A DNA stretch of 64,000 nucleotides, from the IMG/VR virus record IMGVR_UViG_3300032046_000001, positions 186,001-250,000 of that record; one strand, given 5' to 3'. The translations under genes were made by a program, and so were the position numbers. Under the pieces are notes generated by a model. The model had not been told where the DNA came from. It made no database searches and worked only from the letters and a program-made list of their open reading frames with translations. Each line of letters opens with the position of its first letter. Positions within the stretch are counted from its first letter, which is position 1. Below are positions 12,401-27,169 of this stretch, piece after piece.

Positions 12401-13647
12401 AAACACCGGAAATTATTCATGTTGTTACACCACATGTTATTCATACGATTACACCAGTCATTACTGATGTATTTCAATTAATTGATAATAATCAAGATTT
12501 TACTCCTTGGTCAACAGATCCAGAAACTGGTACTGCTCAATATATTGCAATTGTTAAAGATTCTTTCAACAGAACAATATGGGGATGGTTAGGATCTACA
12601 TCAGAATACGGAACAGTAGTTAATATATGGAAAAATAATAATTTAGATACTTCAGATAGAGGTTGGAATGGTGATACTTCAACTTTTGATTATAATGATG
12701 AAAATATAACTTATCAAATTAAAAAATCTGATGTTTCAATTCCAGATTTATTTTCAGTTAAGACTCTTAGAAAAGGTTCTGATGGATCATTAGTTCTAAA
12801 AGGGACTTTTGATGAAGATATTGCTACTCAAATATTATCACAAGGTTATGCTGGATTGATTGACAGTAATGTTCTTGATATTGATGGTACTTATTTTAGT
12901 TTGGTATATGATGCTGGTTATCCAAAAGATGTTAAAGATCAAATTGTAGGTTTAGCACAAGCCAGAGGTGACTGTGTAGCTATCATTGATAATGGTGACA
13001 ATATTTCAGTTAATAGTTCTATTTTATCACGTAAAAATAATTATCAATATAATACTTATTATGCCTCTATATTTGAATCATATAATAGAATATTTGATAT
13101 TTTTACAGAACGACAAATTTGGTTTTCACCATGTTATCACTTAGGTTATATATTACCAAGAAATGATAAGATAGGAGAACTTTGGTTTGCTGCTTCGGGT
13201 AATAATAGAGGTAGTTGTAGAGATATTAAAGAACTTAGATTCAGTCCAAATCAATCACAACGTGATATGTTATATGGTTATCAAATAAATCCGATAATTA
13301 AACAAAATACTGATTATGTTTTATGGGGTCAATTAACATCACAAAGTAAAGCATCAGCTTTACAAGATCTAAATATAGTTAGATTACTTCTTTATATTAA
13401 ACGTGGTGTTCAACAATATGCAAATAATTTTATATTTGATGACAATTCTCAATTAGTTTGGAACACTGTAAGGAACGATGTTACCGACTTCTTAGAACAA
13501 ATTAAAAAGAGACGTGGGTTAATTAATTACACAATCAATGTTGGTGCTACACTGTTAGAAATAAAAAATAAAACTTTTCATGTTGATATTATATTAGAAC
13601 CTACAGGTACTACGGAAAAAATTGAACTGAATTTTTATATCAAATAA
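6499..13647 (+). CDS. Second tail sheath paralog with a large Kelch-like beta-propeller insertion
   Basis: N- and C-terminal parts align with sheath 2359-4317 (SAGVYTKIIDLSTFVQ...; LWFAASGNNRG, QINPI, LWGQLTSQSKASALQDLNI, EKIELNFYIK); aa 293-1954 are repeats. Confidence 0.9.
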   Translation: MANISAGVYTKIIDLSTFVQIVPSTIGFICALTEKGEDNKLKFLGSRSELVDEFGSPNISTYGQQYGQGPYVAYNYLGESGSLYFMRCLPDDATYSNLRIYANSDTTTALFIDYVPSLNSTADITTAMQVFGNNTPLVIFYPIGRGTYYNNIGIEITEDETHADEGVYNIDIYETQSDGSYTLIESFKISFDSSAISTNPGESIYVEHVLETYSKVLRAKVGKDGFDLIDKIYTTEVHTITPTGQDVTDVDVSSSGSTSYIDSTSIINIDSTEIIIIDSTTVEHVQVYDGSSWATTPSLNQARRGLAGCGSTVGALSVGGGTTAVVATTEKWNSHTFAGLWFTTSALNTARYYLAGCGTVTASLSFGGGTVAVVNTTEKWNGSSWATTGSLTQTKSNVSGCGTTTDALCMGGGTTAVVNTTEKWNGSTWATTNALNVAKYRLASCGTTSDALSFGGNTNSASDSASTSITEIWNGSTWYTGSNLNQARYYLAGCGTTSDALAFGGCSTASSAYVNTTEKYSGATLGYIWASTSSLNIVKHLAAGSGNMTDALSFGGYSGSTTSITEKWNNVVWSTVNNLNQARFSLCGCGTTSDSLSFGGSTTNVVLKNTERWNGSSWSTTANINTARHLAAGCGIISSALVLGGNTNAADGSSQNALTEVWTGYSWYTATNLNESKYYIAACGTTSGALCFGGSTAETSAYVNTTEKWSTSVFDYIWTTTSVLNQGRYQTSGCGDSNNALVFGGYTGAVINTTEIWSVSSWATTTNMTLGRNHLSGCGNTTDALNFGGVSSTTRATTEIWNGSSWATTSNLNTARFSLTGCGVTSGALSIGGETGTAPVNNVEIWNGSSWVTTTAISVAKYGLAGCGTTTDALSFCGWTASVTVATTEIWNGSSWATTTSSTQQRYYLAGCGTTLDALNFGGSTSFSQRRTTTEKWNGSLWATVNGLNVAKDYLAGCGATNAALSFGGSSGSSPYDITEKYLQLDIGSWVTTSALNTARRGLAGCGTTSNALSFGGYSGASINVTEIWNGLLWTTGNPLNIPRYNLSGCGATNAALSFGGFMGSTVSTTEKYAEFSVGSWVTTTALTSTKRSLAGCGTTSDALCFGGYTGSATGINVTELWNGSLWATTNILNQTRYGLAGSGDSLNALSFGGYTGAVINTTEIWTQTYFDYWTLTSSLNQAREYLASSGDTSGALAFGGGTTAVVNSTEKWSGSSWVTTSALNTAIRGLAGCGTVTDTLSIGGGTTTVVNTTEKWNGSSWTTTYGLNQSRFDLAACGTTSDALCFGGGTTAVVNTTEKYSQVVSNIWATTNSMTVGRKKLVGIGTVYDALSMSGSTGTNKTEIWNGSSWATTTNLNYGRYFAAGSGITSDALIFSGNTTPSTEKWNGSTWSTTNDINNILLAPAGVGTTSATISFGGGTTTDGSGIPITFSKPGQIWYGSGWYTASLLNVGRALLAMSGTTSDALAFGGNTAGGYTAPTTATEKFSIATQNNIWATTSNMVVAKQEPEECGDVNSSLVFGGYTTDVSNKTEIWNGSSWATTTNMVATIRKHAGCGTTSNALSFGGQTTNKTEIWNGSSWATTSNLDQNRIGLAGCGTTSDTLGFGGGTTVDGYGTVIGWITSSVIWNGSVWTTTAGLNQPRSMLAGCGNTTDALSFGGTTAGGYTGEVTTTELWNGSSWTTTTATTFARFSNSGSGNTSSALCFGGGPVYSTPTTIVDYWNGSIWATTSVLNIARNDGAGSGTGSNALSSGGYTGSSVNTTEKYTQFSIGAWATTSALNLSRYGLAGCGTTNASLAYGGSTGTGVPRLSTEIWNGSSWATTMDQTVARQYQAGCGTTAAALSFGGETYASSSYNTTEIWLPVLYGAWATTSALNQAKSKLSGCGTTTDALSFGGDSNSGNVVSTTEIWNGSSWATTSALNVARQYLAGCGTTSDALSFGGGTTAQVNTTEKWYATYHTNTIVHHIETPEIIHVVTPHVIHTITPVITDVFQLIDNNQDFTPWSTDPETGTAQYIAIVKDSFNRTIWGWLGSTSEYGTVVNIWKNNNLDTSDRGWNGDTSTFDYNDENITYQIKKSDVSIPDLFSVKTLRKGSDGSLVLKGTFDEDIATQILSQGYAGLIDSNVLDIDGTYFSLVYDAGYPKDVKDQIVGLAQARGDCVAIIDNGDNISVNSSILSRKNNYQYNTYYASIFESYNRIFDIFTERQIWFSPCYHLGYILPRNDKIGELWFAASGNNRGSCRDIKELRFSPNQSQRDMLYGYQINPIIKQNTDYVLWGQLTSQSKASALQDLNIVRLLLYIKRGVQQYANNFIFDDNSQLVWNTVRNDVTDFLEQIKKRRGLINYTINVGATLLEIKNKTFHVDIILEPTGTTEKIELNFYIK
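7375..12360 (+). repeat. 36 tandem ~46-aa Kelch-like coding repeats
   Basis: Manual count of units WxTTxxLNxARxxLAGCGTxxxALxFGG...TExWNGSS; the GG doublet and W spacing are Kelch-like. Confidence 0.85.
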
Positions 13648-14472: not shown

Positions 14473-14814
14473 TTATCTAAGGGATTCATCAACTTTAATT
14501 GAGACTAAATTAGTTACTAATTCATCTCTCATACAATAATCGAATATACGTCCTGCTACAGTATTATGTTCATCACCAAAAACTTCATAATTACTTCCAG
14601 GTTTTAATTCGAAGTGATAATCTTCTTCGAGGGATTTGATAAGATCTTCTTTCGTGTATTCTTTATGATATTCATAATAATCCATAATACTAAATAATCC
14701 ATTATGCCATAAATTCTCGACAAACTCTCTTGCTGTTAATATCTTATTTGTTTTATTAACAATAATAAAACTTGTAGAACTACTATTGGTAACAAAATCA
14801 TTTTTAAGTTTCAT
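14473..14814 (-). CDS. VTNSSS-motif family protein #1
   Basis: MKLKNDFVTNSSSTSF. Confidence 0.8.
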   Translation of the reverse strand: MKLKNDFVTNSSSTSFIIVNKTNKILTAREFVENLWHNGLFSIMDYYEYHKEYTKEDLIKSLEEDYHFELKPGSNYEVFGDEHNTVAGRIFDYCMRDELVTNLVSIKVDESLR

Positions 14815-14831
14815 TTAATTCCCTCCATATA

Positions 14832-15074
14832 TCAATCATCCTCATCTTCAGGCGATTCTTCTATTTTTAAAACATGACCATATTTATCATAGAATATTAA
14901 ACCAAAACTTCCTTTATCGCCTTGACAATCTCCACACACTGAAAGTACGTATAAAGCACCTTTAGGATCTGATTTTACTCTTGTTACTATATTAGATTCT
15001 CGACAAATAGGACATTCAAAAGTAATTTCTCGTTCATTCTCCGAATATTTAACTGTTGGTAGAAGTTGACTCAT
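14832..15074 (-). CDS. Zinc-ribbon protein, YDKYG family
   Basis: CPIC...CGDC...FYDKYG. Confidence 0.7.
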   Translation of the reverse strand: MSQLLPTVKYSENEREITFECPICRESNIVTRVKSDPKGALYVLSVCGDCQGDKGSFGLIFYDKYGHVLKIEESPEDEDD

Positions 15075-15267
15075 TCACCACACATCCATATTTATCATAA
15101 TATATTGTATCTTCATCATCACCACTTCGACAATCATTACATGTAAATAATGCGTAAATACTACTTGGTGGATCACAAGATAAACGACGATTTTCAACTA
15201 TTTTACGACATCTTGGACATAAGAGCATAATATGTTTTTCAGTTGGAAATTTGATTGTATCCAACAT
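15049..15267 (-). CDS. Zinc-ribbon protein, YDKYG family
   Basis: CPRC...CNDC...YYDKYG. Confidence 0.7.
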   Translation of the reverse strand: MLDTIKFPTEKHIMLLCPRCRKIVENRRLSCDPPSSIYALFTCNDCRSGDDEDTIYYDKYGCVVNESTSTNS

Positions 15268-15644
15268 TAGTTTAATCGAACAACTTTTCTTGATCGTTTA
15301 ACTTCAATGTCTGGATCATCATCATATTCATCATCTTCATAATCATTATAATATCCGATTGAAAAATTTGGAGTATTAACTTTTTGTAAATCGTTGTCCA
15401 TATAATATAATGTCTGCATTAAAGGACAATCACAATCTTCACTTGATATCTCTAATCTATATACAGTATTAGGTTCCATTGTTTTGACTTTATTATTTAA
15501 ACCCTCTTTGAATGATTTTTTAAAACTGTCGGCAAGATATCTCCATAGTTCATCAACAAAATCATCAAAAGTTAATGTGTTTTTCATCATGATCATAAAA
15601 CATGTTGAACTACTATTTGTAACAAAACTTGTTTTGGCTTTCAT
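15267..15644 (-). CDS. VTNSSS-motif family protein #2
   Basis: MKAKTSFVTNSSSTCF. Confidence 0.8.
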   Translation of the reverse strand: MKAKTSFVTNSSSTCFMIMMKNTLTFDDFVDELWRYLADSFKKSFKEGLNNKVKTMEPNTVYRLEISSEDCDCPLMQTLYYMDNDLQKVNTPNFSIGYYNDYEDDEYDDDPDIEVKRSRKVVRLN

Positions 15645-15862
15645 TATTCTTCCTCATATTTTAATAAATATCCATATTTATCATAAAATTGATATAGATC
15701 TTTTATTTTATTTCTATTTTGATGGCATCTCGCACACATGAGTATTAAAAGAATACTTCCTGATGGGTCATCTGAACACTTAGTTTCAATTTTTGTTTTG
15801 TGGCATTTCGGACACTTCACTAAGATCTCATTTTCTTGTGGAATTGGTATTGTTTCTAACAT
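15644..15862 (-). CDS. Zinc-ribbon protein, YDKYG family
   Basis: CPKC...CARC...FYDKYG. Confidence 0.7.
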   Translation of the reverse strand: MLETIPIPQENEILVKCPKCHKTKIETKCSDDPSGSILLILMCARCHQNRNKIKDLYQFYDKYGYLLKYEEE

Positions 15863-15865
15863 TCC

Positions 15866-16291
15866 TTAATAAGATGTTATGTCTTGATGAACAAGATTCA
15901 TGTGTTCATCATAACACAAAACACTAACTTCGAAATTTCCATCACCATCATAATCTTCTTCGAAATATTCCAAGTCATTATAACAATCATAACATATAAA
16001 AACTATAAATTTAATTTTCTTTTTGTTGATAATGTCATTATCAAAATCTGTGATATCAATATTCCATCCATCTTTATTAAATAAACCTTTATCAAATATT
16101 TTTCCACATATTGGACATTTCAAAAATACTTCATTTTCACTCGGTTTCTTATTATTAACAGGAAGATTTTCTTCGATGCTTTTTTTTCTATTGTGATGTA
16201 AACTAACATGATTTGACTTATTCATTAATTTAAAATTATTAATATTATTATTTTCTTTATTTTCATCTTTATGATGAATACATTGAAACAT
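15866..16291 (-). CDS. Zinc-ribbon protein, YDKYG family (long form)
   Basis: CPIC...CYDC...VLCYDEHMN; GAAGGAG SD before ATG at 16291. Confidence 0.65.
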   Translation of the reverse strand: MFQCIHHKDENKENNNINNFKLMNKSNHVSLHHNRKKSIEENLPVNNKKPSENEVFLKCPICGKIFDKGLFNKDGWNIDITDFDNDIINKKKIKFIVFICYDCYNDLEYFEEDYDGDGNFEVSVLCYDEHMNLVHQDITSY

Positions 16292-16616
16292 AAATACACT
16301 CTCCTTCAGAAATAACATTCATGTATTTGTCATAACATAATACAGGACATGTATACGAACATGTATAATATTCAGCATCAATAATTCCTTCAGTAAATAA
16401 ATTTAAATTATTATCATTTTCATAACAATCCAGACATATATAAATAATATATTTGATTTCTTTACCAAATTTAGAATCTTGATGAAGTTTCATATCATTA
16501 AGTGATTTTACATCTATTTTTCCACATACTGGACATCTTACACATATATGATTATCATCTAATTGAGTTAAATCTGGAAAAGTGTCCAAAATTTTAATAT
16601 AATTATACGGACTCAT
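16269..16616 (-). CDS. Zinc-ribbon protein, YDKYG family (long form)
   Basis: CPVC...CLDC...VLCYDKYMN. Confidence 0.7.
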   Translation of the reverse strand: MSPYNYIKILDTFPDLTQLDDNHICVRCPVCGKIDVKSLNDMKLHQDSKFGKEIKYIIYICLDCYENDNNLNLFTEGIIDAEYYTCSYTCPVLCYDKYMNVISEGECIYVSMYSS

Positions 16617-16815
16617 ATTTTCTTAATGGACAATTATTCGGCCATTTCCAGATAACTGTATTTCTTGATTGACAATGATGAATGAAACCAACATCACTCT
16701 CTGGAAATATACAATAATATCCACCATCGGCACGATTAGGATCTAAATCTTCATTACATTCACAAAATGGACAATCTCCACAACAAGTAATTTCAAGTTC
16801 GATATTAAATTTCAT
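16603..16815 (-). CDS. Small Cys-rich putative metal-binding protein
   Basis: CCGDCPFCEC...C...C...CPL; ATGA overlap with the upstream gene at 16812-16815. Confidence 0.65.
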   Translation of the reverse strand: MKFNIELEITCCGDCPFCECNEDLDPNRADGGYYCIFPESDVGFIHHCQSRNTVIWKWPNNCPLRKYESV

Positions 16816-17243
16816 CCATTGTACCAACATGCGGAAAAGAAGTGAACTAATTGTTTAAAACCTAAATTATTCAAAGTAGTTTGAACTTGTTCAATTATCT
16901 CATTTATTGTTTTATCTTTTGGTGCGTCATTTGGATGCAACGCTATATAAATAAGGTCATTACAATCAGAATGTTGTCTAATACCTATTTTAGTTCCTTC
17001 AAAAATTTCATTGAGATAATCTTCCCAGTAATATTCTTGAGATACTTCTTTAAATTCTTCAAATGATAATTGACATGAGGAAGCGTCACCATCAGTTGCA
17101 GTAGACTCATCTTTCATTATTTTATCAAATAATAATTTTTGAACATATTCAGGCAAATCATCAAATTCACCACGAAATTCAATTCCCCATCCTACAAAGC
17201 TTACACTACTACTATTCGTTACAAAACCAAGTTTTATTTTCAT
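16812..17243 (-). CDS. VTNSSS-motif family protein #3
   Basis: MKIKLGFVTNSSSVSFVGWG; C-terminal P...DKTI.E...L..LGF. Confidence 0.8.
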   Translation of the reverse strand: MKIKLGFVTNSSSVSFVGWGIEFRGEFDDLPEYVQKLLFDKIMKDESTATDGDASSCQLSFEEFKEVSQEYYWEDYLNEIFEGTKIGIRQHSDCNDLIYIALHPNDAPKDKTINEIIEQVQTTLNNLGFKQLVHFFSACWYNG

Positions 17244-17659
17244 TCATCGTCCTCATCTTCTGAAGTATAATCCTCCATTTCAAAAATCATAAACCTTAAT
17301 CCTCTATCAATATCAAGTTGTTTTAATTTTTCTATAATTGAATTTTTAAATTCTCTCAATGTTTGGTCATCATTCATGTTTTCTAAATGTTCACCGATAT
17401 AACATTCATCAAATTCTATGGCATACCCAAGTCCAGACTCATGAAGTATATGTATAATTGCATTTCTAAATTGTGATGGGTGTTCACTGAGACCTTCAAG
17501 AAAATTTTCATATGATATATTCTTATCATAGTATGTCACATATTCATTATATATAAGTTTCTTTAATTTTTCAGGAAATTTATCAACCGTCTGATAAATA
17601 CACCACATACAATATGATGTGCTACTACTGTTAGTAACAAAATCTGATTTTATTTTCAT
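17240..17659 (-). CDS. VTNSSS-motif family protein #4
   Basis: MKIKSDFVTNSSSTSYCMW; MNDDQTLREFK. Confidence 0.8.
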   Translation of the reverse strand: MKIKSDFVTNSSSTSYCMWCIYQTVDKFPEKLKKLIYNEYVTYYDKNISYENFLEGLSEHPSQFRNAIIHILHESGLGYAIEFDECYIGEHLENMNDDQTLREFKNSIIEKLKQLDIDRGLRFMIFEMEDYTSEDEDDE

Positions 17660-18135
17660 CTTTCAATTATAGTGAATATTTCACTCATCCTTTCTTTATC
17701 AAATCCCAATTTTTCTAATTTAGCCTTGATAAATTCCTTATAAAATCTTGCCGTCATATCATCTGGAATTTCTAAGGATGATTTACCAATAATAAATTCG
17801 CTACCAAAAGAATTAATTTCACAAAATAAATTATATTTTTCTGCAATGATTTTAAAAAATTCGAAGTACCATCTATTAATTTCAACTTCTTCTCCGTTGT
17901 CAACTAAATTCTCAAATGTTTCTCTATTATAAGCTCCGAGAGCTTGTGTACAAAAATCATCTATAGATAATTTTGAAATTTTATGTTTTTCACAATGTTC
18001 TAAATAATAATTATATACCTCATCTAAAAACTTTTTAGGTATATCATCATCATTAGAAAATTCAAATAATTCAATTCCCCATCCTGCAAAAGAAACAGAA
18101 GAACTGTTTGTAACATAATCAGATTTAACTTTCAT
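17656..18135 (-). CDS. VTNSSS-motif family protein #5 (frame stays open upstream to 18324)
   Basis: MKVKSDYVTNSSSVSFAGWG at an internal ATG (18135) with GGAGAGGG SD. Confidence 0.75.
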   Translation of the reverse strand: MKVKSDYVTNSSSVSFAGWGIELFEFSNDDDIPKKFLDEVYNYYLEHCEKHKISKLSIDDFCTQALGAYNRETFENLVDNGEEVEINRWYFEFFKIIAEKYNLFCEINSFGSEFIIGKSSLEIPDDMTARFYKEFIKAKLEKLGFDKERMSEIFTIIER

Positions 18136-18320
18136 TTCCCTCTCCAAACATTCGACGTACTCATGTTGTGCTAATTCATATTCATCTTTAAGTTTTTTCA
18201 CAAATTCATTTTCTTTTACTTTTTTATCTAATAAACTTTCGGATAGATCAATCCATCTTGGTCGGTATCTTTTTCTATAATCATCGAGCAACTTTTTCAT
18301 TTTATCACTCATTCGTGCTT

Positions 18321-18665
18321 TCATTTATCCTCCAAAATTATTTTACGTTTTTCAAACCACTCATCCAATGTCAAAATTTCATAATGAACATGTTTTTTAT
18401 AAGTATTATAATCAAAGTGAAGAAAGTCCCATGTTCGAAACCTATTATCTGAAATAGTAAATTCTGTTGGAACCATTTCTTTAGACCATTCTCTTATACC
18501 CCATGTCCAAGATGGTGGCATTTCAATAATTTTATTGACAAATTCTTCCAGAATTGGATTCAACATCTCTTTTATTTTTTCTTTTGATTCTGATTCAATT
18601 TTATAAATATTATAGGTTATATATCCGTCAATACTATTCGAGCATTCTATAATAAATTTATTCAT
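18321..18665 (-). CDS. Hypothetical protein, 'TLxEWF' paralog family
   Basis: Similar to 19477-19782 and 22515-22868 (YxIxxxS..., YEILTLDEWF). Confidence 0.65.
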   Translation of the reverse strand: MNKFIIECSNSIDGYITYNIYKIESESKEKIKEMLNPILEEFVNKIIEMPPSWTWGIREWSKEMVPTEFTISDNRFRTWDFLHFDYNTYKKHVHYEILTLDEWFEKRKIILEDK

Positions 18666-18910
18666 TTGAGTCTTTTATCCACACTTTTTTTATATTTCAT
18701 CCAAGAACATTCTTTTAGGTGTTTACTATAAAGTCCTTTTATAATATTTTTACCACAACCAGGACATACACGACAACAGGGAATACGGTGTTTTACCGTA
18801 CTCCCTGATATATGACAACGACAAGTACATTCTTCTAATGATTTAACCATCTCTTTCAATTTTTGTTTAGTTTCTTTTTTAATTTCTTTAACTCCTTTTA
18901 TTTTTTTCAA
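18662..18910 (-). CDS. Small basic Cys-rich hypothetical protein
   Basis: CTCRCH...CCRVCPGC...H..EC. Confidence 0.6.
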   Translation of the reverse strand: MKKIKGVKEIKKETKQKLKEMVKSLEECTCRCHISGSTVKHRIPCCRVCPGCGKNIIKGLYSKHLKECSWMKYKKSVDKRLK

Positions 18911-19346
18911 TAAAAACTTTCCTTTTTTTACTGATTATTTCTTTAGTTTTTTCTAAATGATGTTTTCCGAAGAATGGATTATTTTTACCTTTATTGTGAT
19001 CAACATTATGATTATATTTTGTTTTCTTTTCTAAATTTTCATAATAATTATTTAATTTAATATCATCTTTGTGATGAATACATTCATTTAATTTTAATTT
19101 ATCATTATAAAAAGTTTCATATACTAAAATGTGAACTCTTTTAGTTTTTTGTTTTTTATTCTTGCATAAAATAACTTGAAAATAACCCTTACTATCTATT
19201 CCTTGTTTTAGTATTCTTTCTTTTTTATATTTTAATGATTTAACTCTACCCAAGTTGCTAACACGATAGTCATTAAAATCTTGAATAATTTTCCATATTT
19301 CATTTTCTAAATCATCTATATCTAAATTTTTAAAAATTTTAATCAT
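18888..19346 (-). CDS. NUMOD4/HNH homing endonuclease
   Basis: EIWKII...YRVSNLGRVKS (NUMOD4), RVHILV, IHHKDD...NLE (HNH); SD before ATG at 19346. Confidence 0.8.
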   Translation of the reverse strand: MIKIFKNLDIDDLENEIWKIIQDFNDYRVSNLGRVKSLKYKKERILKQGIDSKGYFQVILCKNKKQKTKRVHILVYETFYNDKLKLNECIHHKDDIKLNNYYENLEKKTKYNHNVDHNKGKNNPFFGKHHLEKTKEIISKKRKVFIEKNKRS

Positions 19347-19381
19347 TATAATCTCCAATTATTATTCTCAAGTTTAAATTT

Positions 19382-19440
19382 AAAGAGAGAAGGAAGTTTG
19401 AGATCACTTCTTTTCAAGTCGTGATTCTCTATCTCTCTTT
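19382..19440 (-). promoter_or_regulatory. Candidate structured 5' leader upstream of the HNH gene
   Basis: Outer stem AAAGAGAG/CTCTCTTT; homologous to 58632-58689. Confidence 0.5.
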
Positions 19441-19476
19441 TATTATCATATAATGAAAAATAAATTTATAATAAAA

Positions 19477-19782
19477 TCATTCTTCGTCTTCAAATTTAAA
19501 ATCGTCCGTTTTCTTTTTAAAATCATCAAACCAATCATTTAATTCATAAATTGTAATTTCTGGAGAAAAACAAGGTTTTTGATTCCCATCTTCACCATAA
19601 TAGGCGAAATCATAAAACCTATAATATATACTACCACGAAATTCAAAATAATATGGTGGTTCTTTTAATTCACAAAATTGATTTATTAATGATTCCAATT
19701 CAGTTTTTACTTCTTCAACTGAATTGGCTATAATAGGATAAACACCACCAGGGGTATCAATTATAATTTTCATATCAATCAT
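19477..19782 (-). CDS. Hypothetical protein, 'TLxEWF' paralog family
   Basis: YPIIANSVEEVK...ITIYELNDWF. Confidence 0.6.
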   Translation of the reverse strand: MIDMKIIIDTPGGVYPIIANSVEEVKTELESLINQFCELKEPPYYFEFRGSIYYRFYDFAYYGEDGNQKPCFSPEITIYELNDWFDDFKKKTDDFKFEDEE

Positions 19783-20164
19783 CCCTCCAACTATCTTCTA
19801 CAATTCCACATTCTGATGAATCAAAACCAAGTTGTTCAAAAACTTTATCAAGTCTTTTTTCAAATTGTTTCTTAGTTTCATCATCATTCATATCACTGTA
19901 TTCTATGCCAATATAATTGGTATCATCCCAAGGATTAGAATGTACCTCAAGATCAACACTCATTGTTTTACAAGCTATATCGGCTACCATGTAAAGATCC
20001 ACACCTCTCTTAAATTTTTCATAAGTACAATCTGGAGCAAGTTTATCTTTCATAGCATCATAAGTTTTTTGAATAACCGACTCTGGAATTTTAGACATAG
20101 ATAACCCATACATACAAAAACTTACACTACTGCTGTTTGTCACATAATCAATTTTTACTTTCAT
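19775..20164 (-). CDS. VTNSSS-motif family protein #6
   Basis: MKVKIDYVTNSSSVSFCMYG; MNDDETKKQF...LGF. Confidence 0.8.
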   Translation of the reverse strand: MKVKIDYVTNSSSVSFCMYGLSMSKIPESVIQKTYDAMKDKLAPDCTYEKFKRGVDLYMVADIACKTMSVDLEVHSNPWDDTNYIGIEYSDMNDDETKKQFEKRLDKVFEQLGFDSSECGIVEDSWRDD

Positions 20165-20174
20165 TATTTTCCTT

Positions 20175-20577
20175 TTAGTAATTTACATTCTTCTTTGGGG
20201 TGACATCAGAATAATAACTTTCCTCAATATATTCAACATCACCATAAATTCCCAATAACATTAATAAATTTTCAATTCTTTTTATTAAATCATCTTCTGT
20301 TTCACCAGTTTCTTTATCGTATGATGATAAACCAATAACTACTTCATGTTCATTCTGAAGATATTTTAACTCCAATTTTCTACATTCACCTTTAAGATCA
20401 TTAAGCTGAGCTTGAAGATCTAATTTATACTCTTCAAATGTCCCAGTATACCTGGAAAATTTAAATAAGTTTTTGATAATACTCTCGTTTAATCCGTCAC
20501 GAATAAACACATAGGTGCCCCCAAACACAAAATGAAGTGCTACTACTATTCGTTACAAAACCCAATTTAATTTTCAT
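20175..20577 (-). pseudogene. VTNSSS-motif family protein #7, split by a +1 frameshift in a G5 run
   Basis: ATG 20577 gives MKIKLGFVTNSSSTSFCVWG; removing one G at 20518-20522 continues WGTY... as in paralog #10; span is 403 nt = 3n+1. Confidence 0.75.
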
Positions 20578-21014
20578 TCGTACCACTCCTTATCAATATA
20601 TTCGATTTTATTACAAAATTCTTTAAAATCAACAGCATTGGTTTCTTTAAACATTAATTCAAAGATCTCTTTGATTATATTTATATCACTGGAACAATCT
20701 TCATATATATATTCTCCGGTTCTACAATTATATTGTCCTCTGGCATACAAACCGATAAAAATTTCTTCAGTTTCACAACAATAACGAGCAATTAATTTGT
20801 GATCTTCAATAAAATCATAAAAAATCTCATTTATAGTACTAAGTACGAATTCTTCAAAACATTCAATCTTTCTCATATTATGATATCTATCTGATTTTTT
20901 AAAATAATCATATATTGGATGCCATAGACTTTCGGGAACATATTTAATCTTGATACCATAACCAGTGAATGATGTACTACTACTATTAGTTACGAAATCA
21001 AATTTTATTTTCAT
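20574..21014 (-). CDS. VTNSSS-motif family protein #8
   Basis: MKIKFDFVTNSSSTSFTGYG; ATGA overlap at 21011-21014; close duplicate of #9. Confidence 0.8.
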   Translation of the reverse strand: MKIKFDFVTNSSSTSFTGYGIKIKYVPESLWHPIYDYFKKSDRYHNMRKIECFEEFVLSTINEIFYDFIEDHKLIARYCCETEEIFIGLYARGQYNCRTGEYIYEDCSSDINIIKEIFELMFKETNAVDFKEFCNKIEYIDKEWYE

Positions 21015-21457
21015 TGATACCATTCCTTATCAATAAATTCAATTTTTTCGATCATTTCATTAAAATCAACAATTGCGGTTTCTGAAAATAGTACTTTAAA
21101 AATTTCTTTTACTTTTTCTGGATTTCTGGTTGATTCATCATAAATATATTTTTTTATTTTGACATCATAATGTCCTCGTTCTTTTATACCAATAAAAAAT
21201 ACACTTTCTTCTTGACAGTATTTAATATTTAAATTAAAATCTTCAATAAAATCTTGAAATACTCCACCAATACGACCGTTCAAAACAAATTCTTCAAAAT
21301 TCATATCTTCCATATCATAATTATTTTCTTCATTATGCGCCTTGGCATAGTTGTATAGAAGATGCCATAATCTCTCAGGAATATTTTTTAATTTGATACC
21401 ATATCCCGTGAATGATGTACTACTACTGTTTGTAACATAATCAAATTTAATTTTCAT
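21011..21457 (-). CDS. VTNSSS-motif family protein #9
   Basis: MKIKFDYVTNSSSTSFTGYG. Confidence 0.8.
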   Translation of the reverse strand: MKIKFDYVTNSSSTSFTGYGIKLKNIPERLWHLLYNYAKAHNEENNYDMEDMNFEEFVLNGRIGGVFQDFIEDFNLNIKYCQEESVFFIGIKERGHYDVKIKKYIYDESTRNPEKVKEIFKVLFSETAIVDFNEMIEKIEFIDKEWYQ

Positions 21458-21816
21458 ATAATTTCCCCATATGACTCGAATTTCCTTTCTCTCAACAGAT
21501 CAAAATCAACAAATTCAAGTTTAATAACATCTAAAAAACAATCCCATGCATCTAACTCTGATATAAAATCTTTTTGTACCATTGTATCGTCGTTTCCTGA
21601 AACAACAACAATAAATATTGAACTTCCATCCATGTCGTGACTTCTATTAAAACTGACTTCTACATAATCATGAATAATTTCTCTAACAACTTCATTATTA
21701 CAATATTCAGTAAATATTTTGACTTTAAAGTTTGGACACCATTCATCATGGGTTCTTTTAAGAACAGTAATATGTTGTGGAACTGATCGTTTATAACAAC
21801 CATTTTCATCTTTCAT
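21454..21816 (-). CDS. Hypothetical protein (paralog of 22228-22530)
   Basis: AGGAG SD before ATG 21816; C-terminal SG.DD...DF.SE.DA.DCF..(V/I)I.L.F shared with the paralog. Confidence 0.6.
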   Translation of the reverse strand: MKDENGCYKRSVPQHITVLKRTHDEWCPNFKVKIFTEYCNNEVVREIIHDYVEVSFNRSHDMDGSSIFIVVVSGNDDTMVQKDFISELDAWDCFLDVIKLEFVDFDLLRERKFESYGEII

Positions 21817-21820
21817 ACTT

Positions 21821-22024
21821 TTAATCAAACTCCTTATATAAATCTGATTTCCAATGATTTGGAATTGTTGATTGGGAAATATTAATAATCCCGCCACAAA
21901 CTTTACATATGATGTAGTCACCACTGAATTCTACAACATGGATATCATCTTTATATACACCAAGAACACTCTTACAGAATGGACAACTTTTTCTAATAAA
22001 ATCGTTATTTATTATAACATCCAT
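21821..22024 (-). CDS. Small zinc-ribbon protein
   Basis: CPFC...CKVC. Confidence 0.6.
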   Translation of the reverse strand: MDVIINNDFIRKSCPFCKSVLGVYKDDIHVVEFSGDYIICKVCGGIINISQSTIPNHWKSDLYKEFD

Positions 22025-22033
22025 ATCTATCTC

Positions 22034-22240
22034 CTATACAGATTTATATCGAGGATTCCTTTTTAAATTAATATGTCTTATACCAATTCGTTTCTTATGT
22101 TTTTCTATGTTAGCAGTATATGCAAGTACCATCTTTCTAAAATTTTCGGGATCTGTTAAGTCAACGAGTGGCATTTTCTCATATTTTTCTCTCAAATCAT
22201 CCATTATTTTTTTCTTTTCTTCTTCTGTCATTTTATACAC
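22034..22240 (-). CDS. Hypothetical protein
   Basis: ORF in a tightly packed operon. Confidence 0.55.
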   Translation of the reverse strand: MYKMTEEEKKKIMDDLREKYEKMPLVDLTDPENFRKMVLAYTANIEKHKKRIGIRHINLKRNPRYKSV

Positions 22241-22530
22241 ACCTTCAAAAAATTCATTTTTTCGAGATCTTTAAAATTTATAAATTTTAATTGAATTATA
22301 TTCATAAAACAATCTTTCGCGTCGGATTCTGTATCAAAATCATGCAACATTTTAATACCGTTACAACCGCCACCAGAAATAAATATTCTGAATTTTGGTT
22401 GATATGCAAACTCTCCCGTCAATAATTCTATAAGTTGTATCATAACTAATCCAAAATAACTTGATCGCCAATCATCACTCGTTGATTTAAATACTTCTAT
22501 ATATAATTTTTCACTCAATCTTCTGACCAT
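22228..22530 (-). CDS. Hypothetical protein (paralog of 21454-21816)
   Basis: HDFDTESDAKDCFMNIIQLKF. Confidence 0.6.
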   Translation of the reverse strand: MVRRLSEKLYIEVFKSTSDDWRSSYFGLVMIQLIELLTGEFAYQPKFRIFISGGGCNGIKMLHDFDTESDAKDCFMNIIQLKFINFKDLEKMNFLKVCIK

Positions 22531-22868
22531 CTATCTCTATGCTGAATTACAGCACTGTTTTCATCATCTTCTTCAAATAATTTTATTTCATCTCTAATAT
22601 ACCATTCATTAATAGTTATTATCTTATATTCAAACCATACTTTGCTTTGATACCAATCACAGTATATAAAATTAGATGCGAAAAATTCTATTCCATTAAT
22701 TTGAAATTCCCATTCATGAATAAAATTTGTACTGTCGCCTTTTTCCCAATAACCTTCGTCTATTATCTGTTGAAGTACAGGGTCTAATATATTTCTAATC
22801 TGTTGTTCAGATTTAGCAGTAATCCTATATATGTGGTCATTTGGACAAAGTATAATATATTTATTCAT
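22515..22868 (-). CDS. Hypothetical protein, 'TLxEWF' paralog family
   Basis: IYRITAKSEQQIR...YKIITINEWY. Confidence 0.65.
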   Translation of the reverse strand: MNKYIILCPNDHIYRITAKSEQQIRNILDPVLQQIIDEGYWEKGDSTNFIHEWEFQINGIEFFASNFIYCDWYQSKVWFEYKIITINEWYIRDEIKLFEEDDENSAVIQHRDRWSED

Positions 22869-23251
22869 CTATCCTCCCAAGAAGTTAATATAAATTCTGG
22901 TTCTTTGTTAATACCGATGATTTTTAATTTTTCTTTAATTTCATTTTTGAATTCATCCAGAGTTTGATCACCTCTCATTTTCTCAGGACTTCTTCCAAAT
23001 ATAATATACGATGTGCTAAACATATCACCTTTTTCTATAAAATCAAAATTATTATTACGACAAAATTCTCTAATATCATCATATTGACTATTTTTATTTT
23101 TAAAATATAATTCTATATTACCAATTCCACCCACATATTTATATAATTTTTCTGCGATATCTTTAGTGATATCGCAGAAATCAAGATATGTTCCCCATAC
23201 ACAAAAAGAGACTGAACTACTATTCGTAACAAACGATGTTTTTATTTTCAT
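22865..23251 (-). CDS. VTNSSS-motif family protein #10
   Basis: MKIKTSFVTNSSSVSFCVWGTY; GRSPEKMRGDQTLDEFK. Confidence 0.8.
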   Translation of the reverse strand: MKIKTSFVTNSSSVSFCVWGTYLDFCDITKDIAEKLYKYVGGIGNIELYFKNKNSQYDDIREFCRNNNFDFIEKGDMFSTSYIIFGRSPEKMRGDQTLDEFKNEIKEKLKIIGINKEPEFILTSWEDR

Positions 23252-23413
23252 TCTACACTATCCCACAACTTTTTAATCTGATCCTGTTCTTCTAAAGTAG
23301 ATTTCTTTTTAAATTGAAACCAACCAAATGTTTTTTCAAATAATTCCCATGTTGGTTCAAATCCAGCTTTTCTAATTTCATTTTTTAATTTTTTATTACC
23401 GTTTTGGTTTCAT
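23248..23413 (-). pseudogene. Small gene with an apparent +1 frameshift in its first five codons
   Basis: ATG directly follows the upstream TAA; the +1 frame is open to a TGA overlapping the next ATG; span 166 nt = 3n+1. Confidence 0.5.
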
Positions 23414-23752
23414 TTAATATCCAGGATCGAGATCAACATAATAATCAATCTCTGTATTATCAAATCCAATTTGTTTTAATTTATTTTTTATTTTTTCTTT
23501 AAATTCACGAAGAGTTTGATCTTCTTCCATATCACATGGATGTAAACCTATAAATATATTATCAATTTCATCTTTATGATATATCAACCCAAATGATTTA
23601 CATAATTCTTCAAGTTCATCATAAAATAATACTGAATATTTTTTATAGTCATCAATAGTTTTAAATATTTGATATTCACTATTAAATAATATTTCTAAAG
23701 TTTTACTTGGAAGATCTCTTTTGGATGTTTCAATTCCCCAAATTGTCAACAT
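23414..23752 (-). CDS. VTNSSS-family homolog lacking the N-terminal motif
   Basis: Starts MLTIWG; keeps IGLHP.DMEEDQTLREFK...L..IGF. Confidence 0.7.
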   Translation of the reverse strand: MLTIWGIETSKRDLPSKTLEILFNSEYQIFKTIDDYKKYSVLFYDELEELCKSFGLIYHKDEIDNIFIGLHPCDMEEDQTLREFKEKIKNKLKQIGFDNTEIDYYVDLDPGY

Positions 23753-24162
23753 TGAATTATTCCATTACAAAATTCGATTTGATCTGCCCAAAATACACAA
23801 TCCTTTTTTGGTATAAGTCCTGTTTTATTAATTTCATCAACAATTCGTATCTTAAAATCTTTTAAAGTTTCATTATCTTTCATCTTATCTGGACTCATAC
23901 CAACTATCTTTTCACCATCGTCTGTGTATATAATTTCGAGAACATCTTCCAATTTTTCCATTATATAATTAAAACAATCATAATCTTCCATGAAATATTC
24001 ACGAGTGATTGGTTTTGATCGTGTTGAATTGTAACCTCTATCATATTCTTCCCACGCCTTCTGTTTCATTTCTTCAGTAATATTATCTCTTGTTATAACA
24101 ACACCCCAAAGACAATAAGCGCAACTACTACTATTTGTTACGAAACCCAATTTTACTTTCAT
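23746..24162 (-). CDS. VTNSSS-motif family protein #11
   Basis: MKVKLGFVTNSSSCAYCLWG; VGMSPDKMKDNETLKDFK. Confidence 0.8.
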   Translation of the reverse strand: MKVKLGFVTNSSSCAYCLWGVVITRDNITEEMKQKAWEEYDRGYNSTRSKPITREYFMEDYDCFNYIMEKLEDVLEIIYTDDGEKIVGMSPDKMKDNETLKDFKIRIVDEINKTGLIPKKDCVFWADQIEFCNGIIQC

Positions 24163-24657
24163 GTATTTATTTCCTCACATATTGAATCCAAACGTATAGA
24201 ATCTTTATCAAAACCAGCTTCAATAAACGCTGTCTTAATTGATTCTTTATAATCTTTTAAAGTTTCATCTTCCTTCATACTGAATGGGGATTTTCCAATA
24301 AGTACTAACTCACATTCATGAGAAAAAATAACATCAAGTCCATGATCGCATAAATAACGAATTATATATTCTGTGAAATTATAATCAAATTCTCTTACTT
24401 TTCTACGAAAAAAATCATAAGTTACTTTTTTTGATTCTATTGGATGACCTGTACTATAATAATTATATGTCTCACGATAAAAAACCACCATCTTTATTAT
24501 TATCCAAGTAATATTGATAAGATCTTCTTAGTACTTCTTCTGGTAAATAATCTGGTGTAATTCCATTATCATCACAATCTTTAGCATGAAACTCCATTCC
24601 CCACACACAAAATGAAGTGCTACTACTGTTTGTAACAAAACCTAATTTTATTTTCAT
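24159..24657 (-). pseudogene. VTNSSS-motif family protein #12, split by a +1 frameshift in a T6 run
   Basis: 5' part MKIKLGFVTNSSSTSFCVWG; 3' part carries IGKSPFSMKEDETLKDYK; deleting one T at 24479-24484 joins them; span 499 nt = 3n+1. Confidence 0.75.
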
Positions 24658-24863
24658 ATCTCGAAATAATACTCCTCATTTATTTTAATATCTGGACCAC
24701 TATCGTGGCAACCTTCAAATACGAAATTACCCTTATTTGTCTTAATTACTAATCGATATGAACAATACTGTCCGATATAATCTCCTTCTTGAACATCATC
24801 ATCATCATAAATATTTATTTCTTCGATTATTGCGCCATTGAGATTTTTGGGTATTAATTTCAT
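24654..24863 (-). CDS. Hypothetical protein
   Basis: GGAG SD; ATGA overlap with the downstream gene. Confidence 0.6.
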   Translation of the reverse strand: MKLIPKNLNGAIIEEINIYDDDDVQEGDYIGQYCSYRLVIKTNKGNFVFEGCHDSGPDIKINEEYYFEI

Positions 24864-24887
24864 TTTATTTACTCTCCAAAAAAAATT

Positions 24888-24916
24888 AAGACCTCACCCA
24901 ATTTGAGTGAGGTCTT
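24888..24916 (-). terminator. Intrinsic terminator
   Basis: AAGACCTCAC / GTGAGGTCTT 10-bp stem; T tract follows on the - strand. Confidence 0.7.
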
Positions 24917-24921
24917 TTATA

Positions 24922-25302
24922 CTAACTAATCCAAACTTCATTGATAAGATATGGTTCTTGAGTAAATCCGAGTTCTTTTAACTCATTTTGGATTCTATTT
25001 TTTAATTCTCCAAGTGTCATATCATTTTTCAAATAGTCTGGACCTAATCCCAAACAATAGGTAAAACCTCTTTGTATACAACGTAAATTTAAATTTGAAA
25101 AACTTTCAAATTCACTTTGATAAAATTTATTATCTATATATTCACGATATCCGTTACAGATATTTGTAGAATTTATTCGGTTGTGTCTCTCATACATCTT
25201 AACAAGAACTTCATATGGTAATGATCGAACATCTACATAAATACCCCACATACAAACGCTATTTATAGTTATGGGTTGTTTAAAATGATACGTGTTATCC
25301 AC
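24922..25302 (-). CDS. VTNSSS-family homolog with a degenerate N-terminal motif
   Basis: ITINSVCMWG; LGLGPDYLKNDMTLGELK...LKELGF. Confidence 0.7.
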   Translation of the reverse strand: MDNTYHFKQPITINSVCMWGIYVDVRSLPYEVLVKMYERHNRINSTNICNGYREYIDNKFYQSEFESFSNLNLRCIQRGFTYCLGLGPDYLKNDMTLGELKNRIQNELKELGFTQEPYLINEVWIS

Positions 25303-26311
25303 AATTCTCCTCTATCGTTTCAGATATATCTTCCAATTGAAACGGACAACTTGTATTATGATTTCTCAAAAACTCACGACATCCAATAAATGATTCAGAT
25401 TCATTCCAAATCTTTTGAATTGGATTATCATCTGTTATTTGGACTCCGTGAGACGAATAGCAGGCGAATGAACAAGGAACAACCTTACCATCAGGAGTAA
25501 TATACATACTCGCTCTACTGGCCTCACAGGTATCTAAACAGACATCTTCTATACCTGTCAGTTCAGTTATCCTTTTAATCCGATTTACCAAACAAGAATC
25601 AACACCCATCTTGAATTGAGTTTTACCAGCTCTCAATTTATCGATAAATATTTTTATTTGATCATCACTTGGAATAAGATCATAACGATTCTTTGATCTT
25701 CCTTGCGGTTTGAATAACAAAAATACAACAGCATTCAATTTGGAAATATCAAACTGACCATTCCAAATATCTTCACCATCTAATAACCGACACGCTCTTT
25801 CAAATCTCTCAGTTGAAAGAATGAAATGAATATTGGTCTTGATACCAGAGTCAATAAATCTGTTAATCGCGCTATAGGTGAATGGGCGATCATAATCCGA
25901 TACAGCACATGCTCCACATATTTTGGAGAGTTCAATTTGTCCATCAGTCAGACTATTACCCGATGTTGTATAATTTGGAACAACACCATTTGTTCTGGCA
26001 TATGAAATAATTTCTCCAAAATTTGGATGAAGATTGGGATCACCACGTCCACCAAGAGCGATTTGAGTGACGTGATTTTTAGCCTGATCGATAATTTTCT
26101 TAAATGTCTCTAATTCCATATGAGGTTGTTCATCATCTCCCTGATAACAAACAGGACATCGATTTAAACAATGTCCCATAATACCGATATCGAGGAGACT
26201 TGGAAAATCCAAACTGAATGGATCAGGATTTCCATTAACACCTTGTAAAATTTCAAATCCCGTTTCACTATTAAACATGATAACATATGTACTACCCTTA
26301 ATAATTTTCAT
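25295..26311 (-). CDS. Radical SAM protein with SPASM/Twitch-like C-terminus
   Basis: CxxxCxxC (CLNRCPVC), QIALGGRGDPNLHP, NYTTSG, CEASRASMYITPDGKVVPCSF. Confidence 0.92.
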   Translation of the reverse strand: MKIIKGSTYVIMFNSETGFEILQGVNGNPDPFSLDFPSLLDIGIMGHCLNRCPVCYQGDDEQPHMELETFKKIIDQAKNHVTQIALGGRGDPNLHPNFGEIISYARTNGVVPNYTTSGNSLTDGQIELSKICGACAVSDYDRPFTYSAINRFIDSGIKTNIHFILSTERFERACRLLDGEDIWNGQFDISKLNAVVFLLFKPQGRSKNRYDLIPSDDQIKIFIDKLRAGKTQFKMGVDSCLVNRIKRITELTGIEDVCLDTCEASRASMYITPDGKVVPCSFACYSSHGVQITDDNPIQKIWNESESFIGCREFLRNHNTSCPFQLEDISETIEENCG

Positions 26312-26837
26312 TGAATCGTTTTCTCCTCATATAATAAAGTTCTTCGAGATCCTTCTGCGGAATTCGTCTTACAAGTTTAATTTTTTTAGAAACAAGAACA
26401 AGATTTTTATATCCGTCTTTTCCAATTTCATATCCCTCGACTATTATCTCATCAATCTGGACTTTAAATGCCCAATACTTAGTTTCATCATCAAAATCAG
26501 TATTTATTAATTCAACTGGATAATTGTCTACTAATGAGTATAGATGTTTATATGAGTGAAAACCACTAAAATAAGTATCATTGGTTTTCACTTCATGTTC
26601 ATTCCATATGGTTATTTGACATTGAGGAAAATTAGTTCCATCATCATCGAGTTCTGAATTCATCCATTTATTGAGGGTATAACAATAAAAATAATCACCT
26701 CTGCGAAAGAGTCCAACGGCAGATCCAGAATACATACTATAGAATCCATACATATCTTCCTGAATTATTTTATAACCAAATGTGGCTTTCTTAGTAACTG
26801 GTTCATTATAAATATTTCGAATAATATGGAGACACAT
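26298..26837 (-). CDS. Hypothetical protein, 'YK...SGFHSY' paralog family
   Basis: MCLHII start; GYKII...YFSGFHSY...SKKIKLVRRI. Confidence 0.65.
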   Translation of the reverse strand: MCLHIIRNIYNEPVTKKATFGYKIIQEDMYGFYSMYSGSAVGLFRRGDYFYCYTLNKWMNSELDDDGTNFPQCQITIWNEHEVKTNDTYFSGFHSYKHLYSLVDNYPVELINTDFDDETKYWAFKVQIDEIIVEGYEIGKDGYKNLVLVSKKIKLVRRIPQKDLEELYYMRRKRFNENY

Positions 26838-26839
26838 AA

Positions 26840-27169
26840 CTAAAACATCGAATTCAAAAAGTTTATTAGAAAGTCTTGTCGATAACAATTAAATTTCAAA
26901 TTTACAATATCTGACAATGTTGATCTAAAAAGTTTGTTATAATCAATTTTTGATTCGTGATGAGATCTTGGATGATGATGATGATATTTTGCTTTATAAA
27001 CATCACTATATTGAACATTCACAGTATATGCGTTATTTACTGTATTATTGTTAGTTGCTTGAGTTGTAGTCGTGATATTATTATTAATTACAGGATCTAT
27101 TGGAGTATTATCTTCTGGTGGATTATTTTTCTCATTTTTAACATAACCAGGAACATGACTGATTTTCAT
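26840..27169 (-). CDS. Hypothetical low-complexity protein
   Basis: GGAGG SD; N/T-rich with an HHHH run. Confidence 0.5.
   Translation of the reverse strand: MKISHVPGYVKNEKNNPPEDNTPIDPVINNNITTTTQATNNNTVNNAYTVNVQYSDVYKAKYHHHHPRSHHESKIDYNKLFRSTLSDIVNLKFNCYRQDFLINFLNSMF

Follow-up and report, generated by a model that had tools for sequence, protein, structure and literature searches.

A 64 kb stretch of the IMG/VR virus record IMGVR_UViG_3300032046_000001 (positions 186,001 to 250,000, called the window below) carries twelve genes that share a short N-terminal sequence, the tag, together with a gene for a radical S-adenosylmethionine (rSAM) enzyme with a CxxxCxxC motif. All lie on the minus strand, and in the direction of transcription the enzyme gene comes first. 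The source contig (312,420 bp) is that of a tailed jumbo phage, with genes for tail sheath, baseplate, large terminase and thymidylate synthase, and a G+C content of about 28%. The twelve co-oriented tag starts and the place of the enzyme gene had been proposed in an earlier note made from the sequence alone, and both were borne out (Table 1).

The tag has a consensus of about 16 residues, MK(I/V)KxDFVTNSSSx(S/N/A/C)(F/Y), at the extreme N-terminus. A back-translated pattern, MK.K..[FY]VTN followed by three WSN codons (which besides Ser also cover Thr, Cys, Trp, Arg and stop), matched the window exactly 12 times, all on the minus strand between 14,473 and 24,657, and gave no match in 100 dinucleotide shuffles. 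A relaxed protein scan of the whole window found no tag beyond these 12. A GGAG/GAGG-like ribosome-binding site is present just 5′ of most of the starts, and directly 5′ of the ATG of tag gene 5 (at 18135) it reads GGAGAGGG. Ten of the tag genes are intact and two (7 and 12) are split by frameshifts, so that the earlier count holds for tags, while two of the genes are broken. The invariant residues vary synonymously: Thr9 is encoded by four codons, Asn10 by AAT and AAC, and Ser12 and Ser13 from both the AGY and TCN boxes, while the 67 nt DNA copies of the tag region are just 60–85% identical. Selection therefore acts at the protein level, as the earlier note had argued from the codons. On the same observations, the idea that a DNA-level repeat or an RNA element explains the conservation was rejected.

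Downstream of the tag, most of the window proteins are true paralogs over their full length, with WG, PE, IG and D.TL.EFK..I..KL..LGF in common; the bodies of tag genes 1 and 2 differ from this main type. The claim of strongly diverged bodies falling into at least two types is thus right in that additional types exist, and too strong for the window, where most bodies are homologous along their whole length. Tag genes 8 and 9 form a pair at the DNA level (79% identical over 111 nt), and the N-terminal open reading frame (ORF) of tag gene 12 overlaps its body ORF in a different frame. The body type of tag gene 1 is common to 14 proteins of other viral contigs, and tag gene 4 has 17 homologues at E ≤ 1e-3 in a word-indexed search of 5.8 billion proteins.

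Table 1. Genes of the tag array and its radical SAM enzyme, in order of transcription (window coordinates).
Feature	Coordinates	Strand	Remarks
Radical SAM enzyme, Twitch-like C-terminal cluster domain, 338 aa	25295..26311	-	First array gene as transcribed
Main-body paralog, decayed tag YHFKQPITINSVCMWG, without FVTNSSS	24922..25302	-	Directly after enzyme gene; whole-body alignment
Tag gene 12, N-terminal piece, 61 aa	24472..24657	-	Pattern match 24620-24657; frameshift split
Tag gene 12, body piece, 110 aa	24159..24491	-	Matches C-terminal two thirds of paralogs, including D.TLK.YK..I...F...GF
Tag gene 11, main body type, 138 aa	23746..24162	-	Pattern, alignment, clustering
Main-body paralog without tag, 112 aa	23414..23752	-	Alignment from WG motif onwards
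Tag gene 10, main body type, 128 aa	22865..23251	-	The modelled tag protein
Tag gene 9, 148 aa	21011..21457	-	Pattern, alignment
Tag gene 8, 146 aa from tag ATG	20574..21014	-	Pattern, alignment
Tag gene 7, N-terminal piece, 26 codons then stop	20497..20577	-	Frameshift in G run
Tag gene 7, body piece, 117 aa	20175..20528	-	Paralog alignment; overlaps tag piece in other frame
Tag gene 6, main body type, 129 aa	19775..20164	-	Pattern, alignment, clustering
Tag gene 5, 159 aa from tag ATG	17656..18135	-	ORF open up to 18324
Tag gene 4, main body type, 139 aa	17240..17659	-	Pattern, alignment
Tag gene 3, main body type, 143 aa	16812..17243	-	Pattern, alignment, clustering
Tag gene 2, different body, 125 aa	15267..15644	-	Outside main BLAST cluster
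Tag gene 1, third body type, 113 aa	14473..14814	-	BLAST cluster 4

The enzyme belongs to the radical SAM superfamily by its motif, its Pfam matches and the rSAM-core fold of SuiB, PqqE and viperin. Its CX3CX2C cysteines (C48, C52 and C55) are invariant in 45 phage homologues and 31 homologues of the Avs type described below. It scores 29.2 bits with Pfam Radical_SAM (PF04055), just below the cut-off of 29.5, and 27 bits with SPASM (cut-off 21.5), and matches phrog_7293, a family with no assigned function, at 4e-30. Four auxiliary cysteines (C240, C262, C280 and C322) are conserved throughout an alignment of 86 relatives, as are the three of the SAM cluster. The block that would complete a SPASM domain (C-x3-C-x5-C-x3-C...C) is found in 97–100% of the bacterial relatives versus 0–2% of the phage ones. 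With four auxiliary cysteines only, the phage clade is Twitch-like and lacks the seven cysteines of SPASM, which its bacterial cousins have in full; of the SPASM/Twitch-like tail described earlier, the second term applies. By its sequence the phage enzyme probably carries one auxiliary cluster. At least 944 relatives were found at E ≤ 1e-10, mostly 50–57% identical, all with generic names or none. None of the NCBIfam maturase models came near its cut-off for the window enzyme, and Pfam, PHROGs, NCBIfam and PADLOC hold no curated model for this rSAM clade or for the tag proteins.

An AlphaFold2 model of the enzyme (predicted local distance difference test, pLDDT, of 94) gave as best Foldseek match SuiB with its bound precursor peptide (E 1.6e-12; template modelling score, TM, 0.64), followed by SkfB, PqqE and CteB. 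These outrank DesII, the viperins, BtrN, EpeE and the anaerobic sulfatase-maturating enzymes (anSME), and PqqE was the sole sequence match in the PDB. Judged by this modelled fold, the enzyme looks like a peptide maturase. Before the barrel, the model shows three short N-terminal strands that form a three-stranded sheet (residues 2–24). Viperin-like nucleotide chemistry (pVip) was considered and rejected, as the NCBIfam viperin model scored 17.7 bits against a cut-off of 180, the PADLOC pVip match was merely 8e-7 (residues 44–127), and peptide maturases come ahead of viperins in the fold search.

If the tag and the enzyme belong together, they should be found together elsewhere. The DNA pattern of the tag alone was scanned across 2.9 million IMG/VR viral contigs and gave at least 120 loci; 160 of the 173 matches listed read FVTNSSS, though the pattern permitted other residues. 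An rSAM gene is present in 63 of the 120 pieces fetched for the listed matches, and 49 of the 120 encode a homologue of the window enzyme (type 1, E < 1e-50), with E values of 1e-100 to 1e-128 among the best 40 listed. The 58 tag ORFs beside the type-1 enzyme all share its strand; 57 of them follow it downstream, and 23 have their start no more than 27 nt from the end of the enzyme gene; the reading frames of tag gene and rSAM often overlap or abut. In another 14 of the 120 loci the tag gene stands directly upstream of a second rSAM family, which has LLTRKCNLxCxYCAIV, a length of about 350 aa and a tail rich in Cys, and which phmmer does not join to the window enzyme (viral loci L007, L011, L013, L023, L051, L067, L078, L079, L083, L087, L089, L110 and L112; also L162). 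At least four viral contigs carry both families, at distant sites.

The reverse search started from the enzyme, using 79 loci from the best 80 of 384 relatives in IMG/VR and a neighbourhood of 6 kb. One to six downstream tag ORFs were found by regular expression in 55 of the 79, and a further seven carry tags that are variant (MKIITDF..., ...DHITNSSS) or lie upstream, bringing the total to about 62; none of the 79 has a tag gene on the strand opposite the enzyme. Close homologues that have no tag gene within 6 kb are found in L127, L141, L257–L259, L269, L273, L279, L281 and L282. Most of these are followed by an ORF of ~203 aa ('GNMNDDDPEDHR...EVVAVPP') and one of ~160 aa with a signal-peptide-like start, a pair that may represent a different client set. 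L142 (158–1001) and L143 encode a 32%-identical rSAM with two upstream ORFs in which a variant motif, 'HSFVDLITNSSTEIYV', lies internally, some 14 residues after the start, which hints at a family extending beyond the strict N-terminal form. No third conserved component was seen to travel with the phage module in the viral loci examined.

Among 50,697 cultured phage records, tblastn with a tag protein gave no match, and the only full-length enzyme homologues (27–28% identical) are those of Slopekvirus and other T4-like phages. Such rSAM/SPASM homologues occur in Klebsiella phage Miro (L144, 91043–92197) and 171 other cultured phage records, the hosts of these T4-like phages being Klebsiella, Enterobacter, Citrobacter and Cronobacter. 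In the one region inspected, that of phage Miro, the neighbours of the rSAM gene have no tag. By these searches, cultured phages lack the system and offer no close relatives of it.

The module is not specific to phages, and occurs also in Avs2-type defence operons. The same tag pattern, run against one genome per species for 185,579 species, gave 65 cellular loci, nearly all in metagenome-assembled genomes (MAGs) from rumen, gut, sediment and digester. Their taxa include Bacteroidales, Clostridia, Desulfobacterota, Nitrospirota and Omnitrophota among others, with one isolate, Tissierella praeacuta. An rSAM homologue is adjacent in 52 of the 65, and in 42 there is a gene for an Avs2-like STAND (signal transduction ATPase with numerous domains) NTPase. 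The main architecture is STAND NTPase, a ~130 aa protein, a ~135 aa tag protein and then the rSAM; in 40 of the 41 loci where both could be placed, the STAND gene and the tag gene have a conserved slot of 353–481 nt between them, as room for the second small gene. The NTPase matches Avs2 models of PADLOC (2e-24) and NCBIfam (3e-15). In Tissierella it is fused to a trypsin-like domain and preceded by a gene of the metallo-beta-lactamase (MBL) fold, which is the Avs2-trypsin-MBL layout (bioRxiv 10.64898/2026.08.25.746987). The pAt plasmid of Agrobacterium Ach5 has the same four-gene order, with a SMEK domain on the NTPase and a tag that reads MKLKMDFVSNSSS.

A second cellular architecture, in Clostridia and Erysipelotrichaceae MAGs, consists of a multi-pass membrane protein, an rSAM with C-x8-C-x6-C in place of CX3CX2C as its first cluster motif, and a tag protein of about 500 aa (MKIKVDYVTNSSSE...) that has a long coiled coil and a hydrophobic segment of membrane-like character (L153, L156, L157, L165, L173, L178, L179, L181, L189, L193, L199 and L200). 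STAND is absent from the one operon of this kind that was read (L179), and the STAND search matched none of these loci. Nor was a STAND homologue found for the listed matches of the 120 tag-selected viral loci, and the window has no STAND gene and no Avs2-sized gene adjoining the array. A quick tree separates the rSAMs by context, giving each of the three a clade of its own with good support. Phage-type tag arrays are also present on archaeal MAG contigs (L172, L198, L192 and L151; Promethearchaeota and Thermoplasmatales). The sole rSAM copy from an Asgard MAG (L172) nests inside the phage clade, suggesting that such contigs are probably viruses binned with the MAGs, which could hint at archaeal hosts.

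In hundreds of uncultured phages, tag and enzyme genes are therefore conserved as a co-oriented pair whose members usually abut, and that they form a functional pair is firmly supported. Tag genes commonly standing apart from this rSAM clade, an outcome that would have spoken against the pairing, were not seen, the linkage being strong in both directions and in viral and cellular loci alike. This bears on the idea that the tag is a targeting signal, for capsid packaging, export or controlled degradation, unrelated to an enzyme that merely sits in the same hypervariable cassette. The internal proteins of phage T4 offer the model: diversified small proteins with only a short N-terminal sequence in common, a capsid-targeting sequence that serves as packaging signal and as cleavage signal for the prohead protease. 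The array also lies within a region full of other small paralog families. In contrast to the T4 case, the tag goes together with a radical SAM enzyme, and this pairing is kept in chromosomal and plasmid operons that have no virion, and with two different rSAM families, often in overlapping or abutting frames, which makes a pure targeting role improbable.

The tag behaves as a portable module. When the first 20 residues were removed, a set of 255 unique tag proteins sorted into 39 BLAST clusters, 13 of them with at least five members, and the tag is thus found on 13 or more bodies unrelated in sequence. The median size is 128 aa; the proteins span 59–234 aa in viral loci and reach 530 aa in genome loci; by cluster, lengths run from ~90 to 530 aa and include the membrane-like, coiled-coil type described above. 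A profile of the window body type matched 3,728 cluster representatives among 1.84 billion, and the bacterial type gave 607 matches in the word-indexed search; when phage and bacterial types were compared by hhalign, only the N-terminus aligned. Pfam, PHROGs, NCBIfam and PADLOC returned nothing meaningful for the tag proteins. The AlphaFold2 model of tag gene 10 (pLDDT 90.4) shows a compact alpha/beta body with residues 13–126 folded, while the first 10–12 residues have a pLDDT of about 54 and no secondary structure; on this model the tag is shown as a flexible tail and not a buried strand. A fold search with the body gave no significant PDB match (best E 0.01, TM 0.39). Its best matches among viral structures are weak ones to uncharacterised proteins of the giant eukaryotic viruses Catovirus, Pithovirus and medusavirus (E 8e-4 to 3e-2, TM 0.36–0.49).

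These results also concern the possibility that the motif is the conserved first strand or an active-site loop of one ancient fold, in which case the tag proteins would be a single divergent family syntenic with the rSAM. The residues right after the tag (xSF and hydrophobics) do begin the first beta strand of the modelled body, and most window copies are full-length paralogs. Against a single family stand the number of BLAST-level clusters and their spread of lengths, from ~90 to ~530 aa with a membrane-like/coiled-coil type among them, the failure of hhalign to see similarity past the N-terminus between two large types, and the unstructured, low-confidence tag of the model. The buried strand of a shared fold, which the earlier note had named as an outcome to look for, did not appear, and a single ancient fold is very improbable.

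The closest described system is the KpAvs2 defence operon of Klebsiella, whose gene for an Avs2-type STAND NTPase is accompanied by those for a radical SAM protein (Avap1) and a small accessory protein (Avap2; HHpred match DUF6375). Avap2 binds Avs2, and inactivation of the rSAM does not remove the need for it (Bechon et al. 2024, PMC11564622). Avap1 gave no viperin-type products, fitting a substrate other than a nucleotide, and the roles of Avap1 and Avap2 are stated as not known (PMC11564622). Homologous operons were reported from Nitrospirae and Syntrophobacterales (PMC11564622), taxa in which tag operons were found too. Three genes are described there, whereas the cellular tag operons have four, and the window module has no STAND gene beside it. 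HMMER with DUF6375 (PF19902) found no match for the tag proteins or the ~130 aa partner, even at E ≤ 10, and the names of the protein clusters all read 'hypothetical protein'; the assignment in the paper was made by HHpred. Homology of the tag module with Avap1/Avap2, its candidate relative, is plausible. More speculatively, the tag-rSAM pair in bacteria would be an accessory module of Avs2-like STAND antiviral sensors.

Three other kinds of system invite comparison. Maturases of peptides that are made by ribosomes and modified after translation (RiPPs), namely SuiB (streptide), SkfB, PqqE and CteB, are the best fold matches, have auxiliary Fe-S cysteines, and are encoded beside genes whose products carry a conserved N-terminal recognition sequence. 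The clients here differ from RiPPs in being folded proteins of 90–530 aa with no short leader/core precursor, with the extreme N-terminus as their only common part. In the enzyme, Pfam found no PqqD-like element, and the phage clade has four auxiliary cysteines only. The anSMEs are SPASM rSAMs, one enzyme serving many different full-length clients in which it oxidises a Ser or Cys that lies within a short motif close to the N-terminus, and the fold search with the window enzyme matched anSMEcpe (E 4e-6). Their client motif, (C/S)-x-(P/A)-x-R, is not in the tag (MK.K.DFVTNSSS.SF), the clients here are not sulfatases, and the second auxiliary cluster of anSME is lacking in the phage enzyme. In the HXS anti-phage system, the effector HxsA is matured by the rSAMs HxsB and HxsC (Li et al. 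2026, PMC13128918), which sets a precedent for defence by a protein effector that rSAMs mature, and some phage contigs here similarly have two different rSAMs. However, the clients have no His-Xaa-Ser repeats, operon content differs and the module is mainly phage-borne; the HxsC model scored 25.9 bits on a bacterial relative (cut-off 267.9) and was not among the matches of the window enzyme. A precedent for folded-protein substrates is reported with protein thioether cross-links in methanogens (PMC13692751), and in other STAND-linked systems rSAM-SPASM modification of C-terminal peptide effectors was predicted by Kaur et al. (PMC7159879).

The array is probably a maturase-plus-clients module with the tag as docking or modification site of the enzyme, a reading held with moderate confidence from sequence comparison and structural models. 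One rSAM of the SPASM/Twitch peptide-maturase type would serve an array of small proteins through their portable, exposed tag, which would dock into the enzyme as an extended peptide, possibly against the small N-terminal three-stranded sheet. The 5′-deoxyadenosyl radical would then abstract hydrogen from one of the residues that make up the invariant T-N-S-S-S, and the outcome would be a covalent change such as an oxidation, epimerisation or cross-link, between which sequence cannot tell. In this way one enzyme could mature the whole panel. The modified residue would most likely lie within T9–S13, the sole part that the predicted clients have in common. The earlier proposal of a recognition or modification tag thus gains from the linkage, the modular and apparently exposed tag and the maturase fold; that of one enzyme for a diversified phage panel gains from the generality of the pairing and has to make room for cellular Avs2 operons, a second rSAM family and tagless loci.

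Several points weigh against this interpretation. Covalent modification of the tag, together with the type of reaction, is inferred rather than drawn from biochemistry, and adjacency of the genes is equally compatible with a non-covalent complex of enzyme and partner. The Pfam scan of the enzyme found Radical_SAM and SPASM only, with no RiPP recognition element. Low terminal pLDDT is no proof of exposure, and one body type was modelled. Many of the tag-selected viral pieces, mostly short or incomplete ones, have no rSAM, and about a fifth of the enzyme-selected viral loci (~17 of 79) have no tag gene within 6 kb. The two open paralogs of the window with a decayed tag or none (Table 1) suggest that the body may work without it. 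In the KpAvs2 operon, Avap1 is needed against phage T2 and not against SECphi18 (PMC11564622).

In the main rival reading, the tag proteins would be interchangeable partner or adaptor subunits and not substrates. The tag would dock each of them on the rSAM, while the variable body would regulate the enzyme or bring to its active site a third party, be it a host protein, a nucleic acid or a small molecule. The same linkage data apply to it, as does the combination of highly diverse bodies with an invariant tag, and the small KpAvs2 accessory protein, which binds the STAND protein and is needed even with the rSAM inactivated, sets an example (PMC11564622). It is nevertheless rather unlikely, since the proteins nearest to the enzyme in structure act on their bound peptide, the enzyme is small (338 aa) with little space for a second macromolecular substrate, and in the viral loci examined no third conserved component accompanies the phage module.

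Several other gene families lie in and around the array. Among the tag genes there are five or six small CxxC...CxxC zinc-ribbon paralogs (14832–16830, minus strand), most with a 'YDKYG' motif, and further small paralog families (18321–18665, 22515–22868 and 19477–19782; 21454–21924 and 22228–22530). Just upstream of the rSAM gene are two 'SGFHSY' paralogs (26298–26888 and 27178–27660, minus strand), adjoined by a 326 aa pentapeptide-repeat protein (27661–28641, minus strand; Pfam 1.7e-27). Pentapeptide-repeat proteins can be DNA mimics. On the plus strand, a 2,382 aa ORF (6499–13647) has a start that resembles a tail sheath protein when read by eye and roughly fifty Kelch-like 'TTEKWNGSSWATT...GCG' repeats, also counted by eye; just upstream of it are a 652 aa sheath gene (2359–4317) and an HNH/homing endonuclease gene (4400–6430).

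A radical SAM maturase with tagged clients is a known kind of system, and the present variant is real, widespread and, within the searches made, undescribed: the literature searched gave no description of an N-terminal TNSSS tag or of phage arrays, and the motif string gave unrelated matches only. In IMG/VR, the viral contigs have at least 384 stretches that code for a relative of the enzyme. If the enzyme truly modifies the tag, this would be a large, unannotated protein-maturation system, one from which rSAM enzymology would gain a compact enzyme, a fixed substrate of 16 residues that can be synthesised, and chemistry on Thr, Asn or Ser that is probably new. A portable tag read by one enzyme could also serve as a handle in protein engineering. 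For the conflict between phages and bacteria, the accessory role of the rSAM in Avs2 operons becomes a directly testable question. Uncultured phages, jumbo phages included, would deploy panels of enzyme-matured proteins, and the kinship with Avs2 accessory modules suggests, by analogy, that the expanded panels may be matured effectors in counter-defence against STAND-type immunity or in host takeover. That phages took over the maturase-plus-tag scheme of Avs2-like STAND sensors and enlarged it into an arsenal, the modified tag proteins being decoys or inhibitors of STAND-type immunity, or other takeover effectors, is a tentative and rather unlikely proposal; if true, phage effectors armed post-translationally would form a new class, and the accessory role of the rSAM in Avs2 operons would have its explanation.

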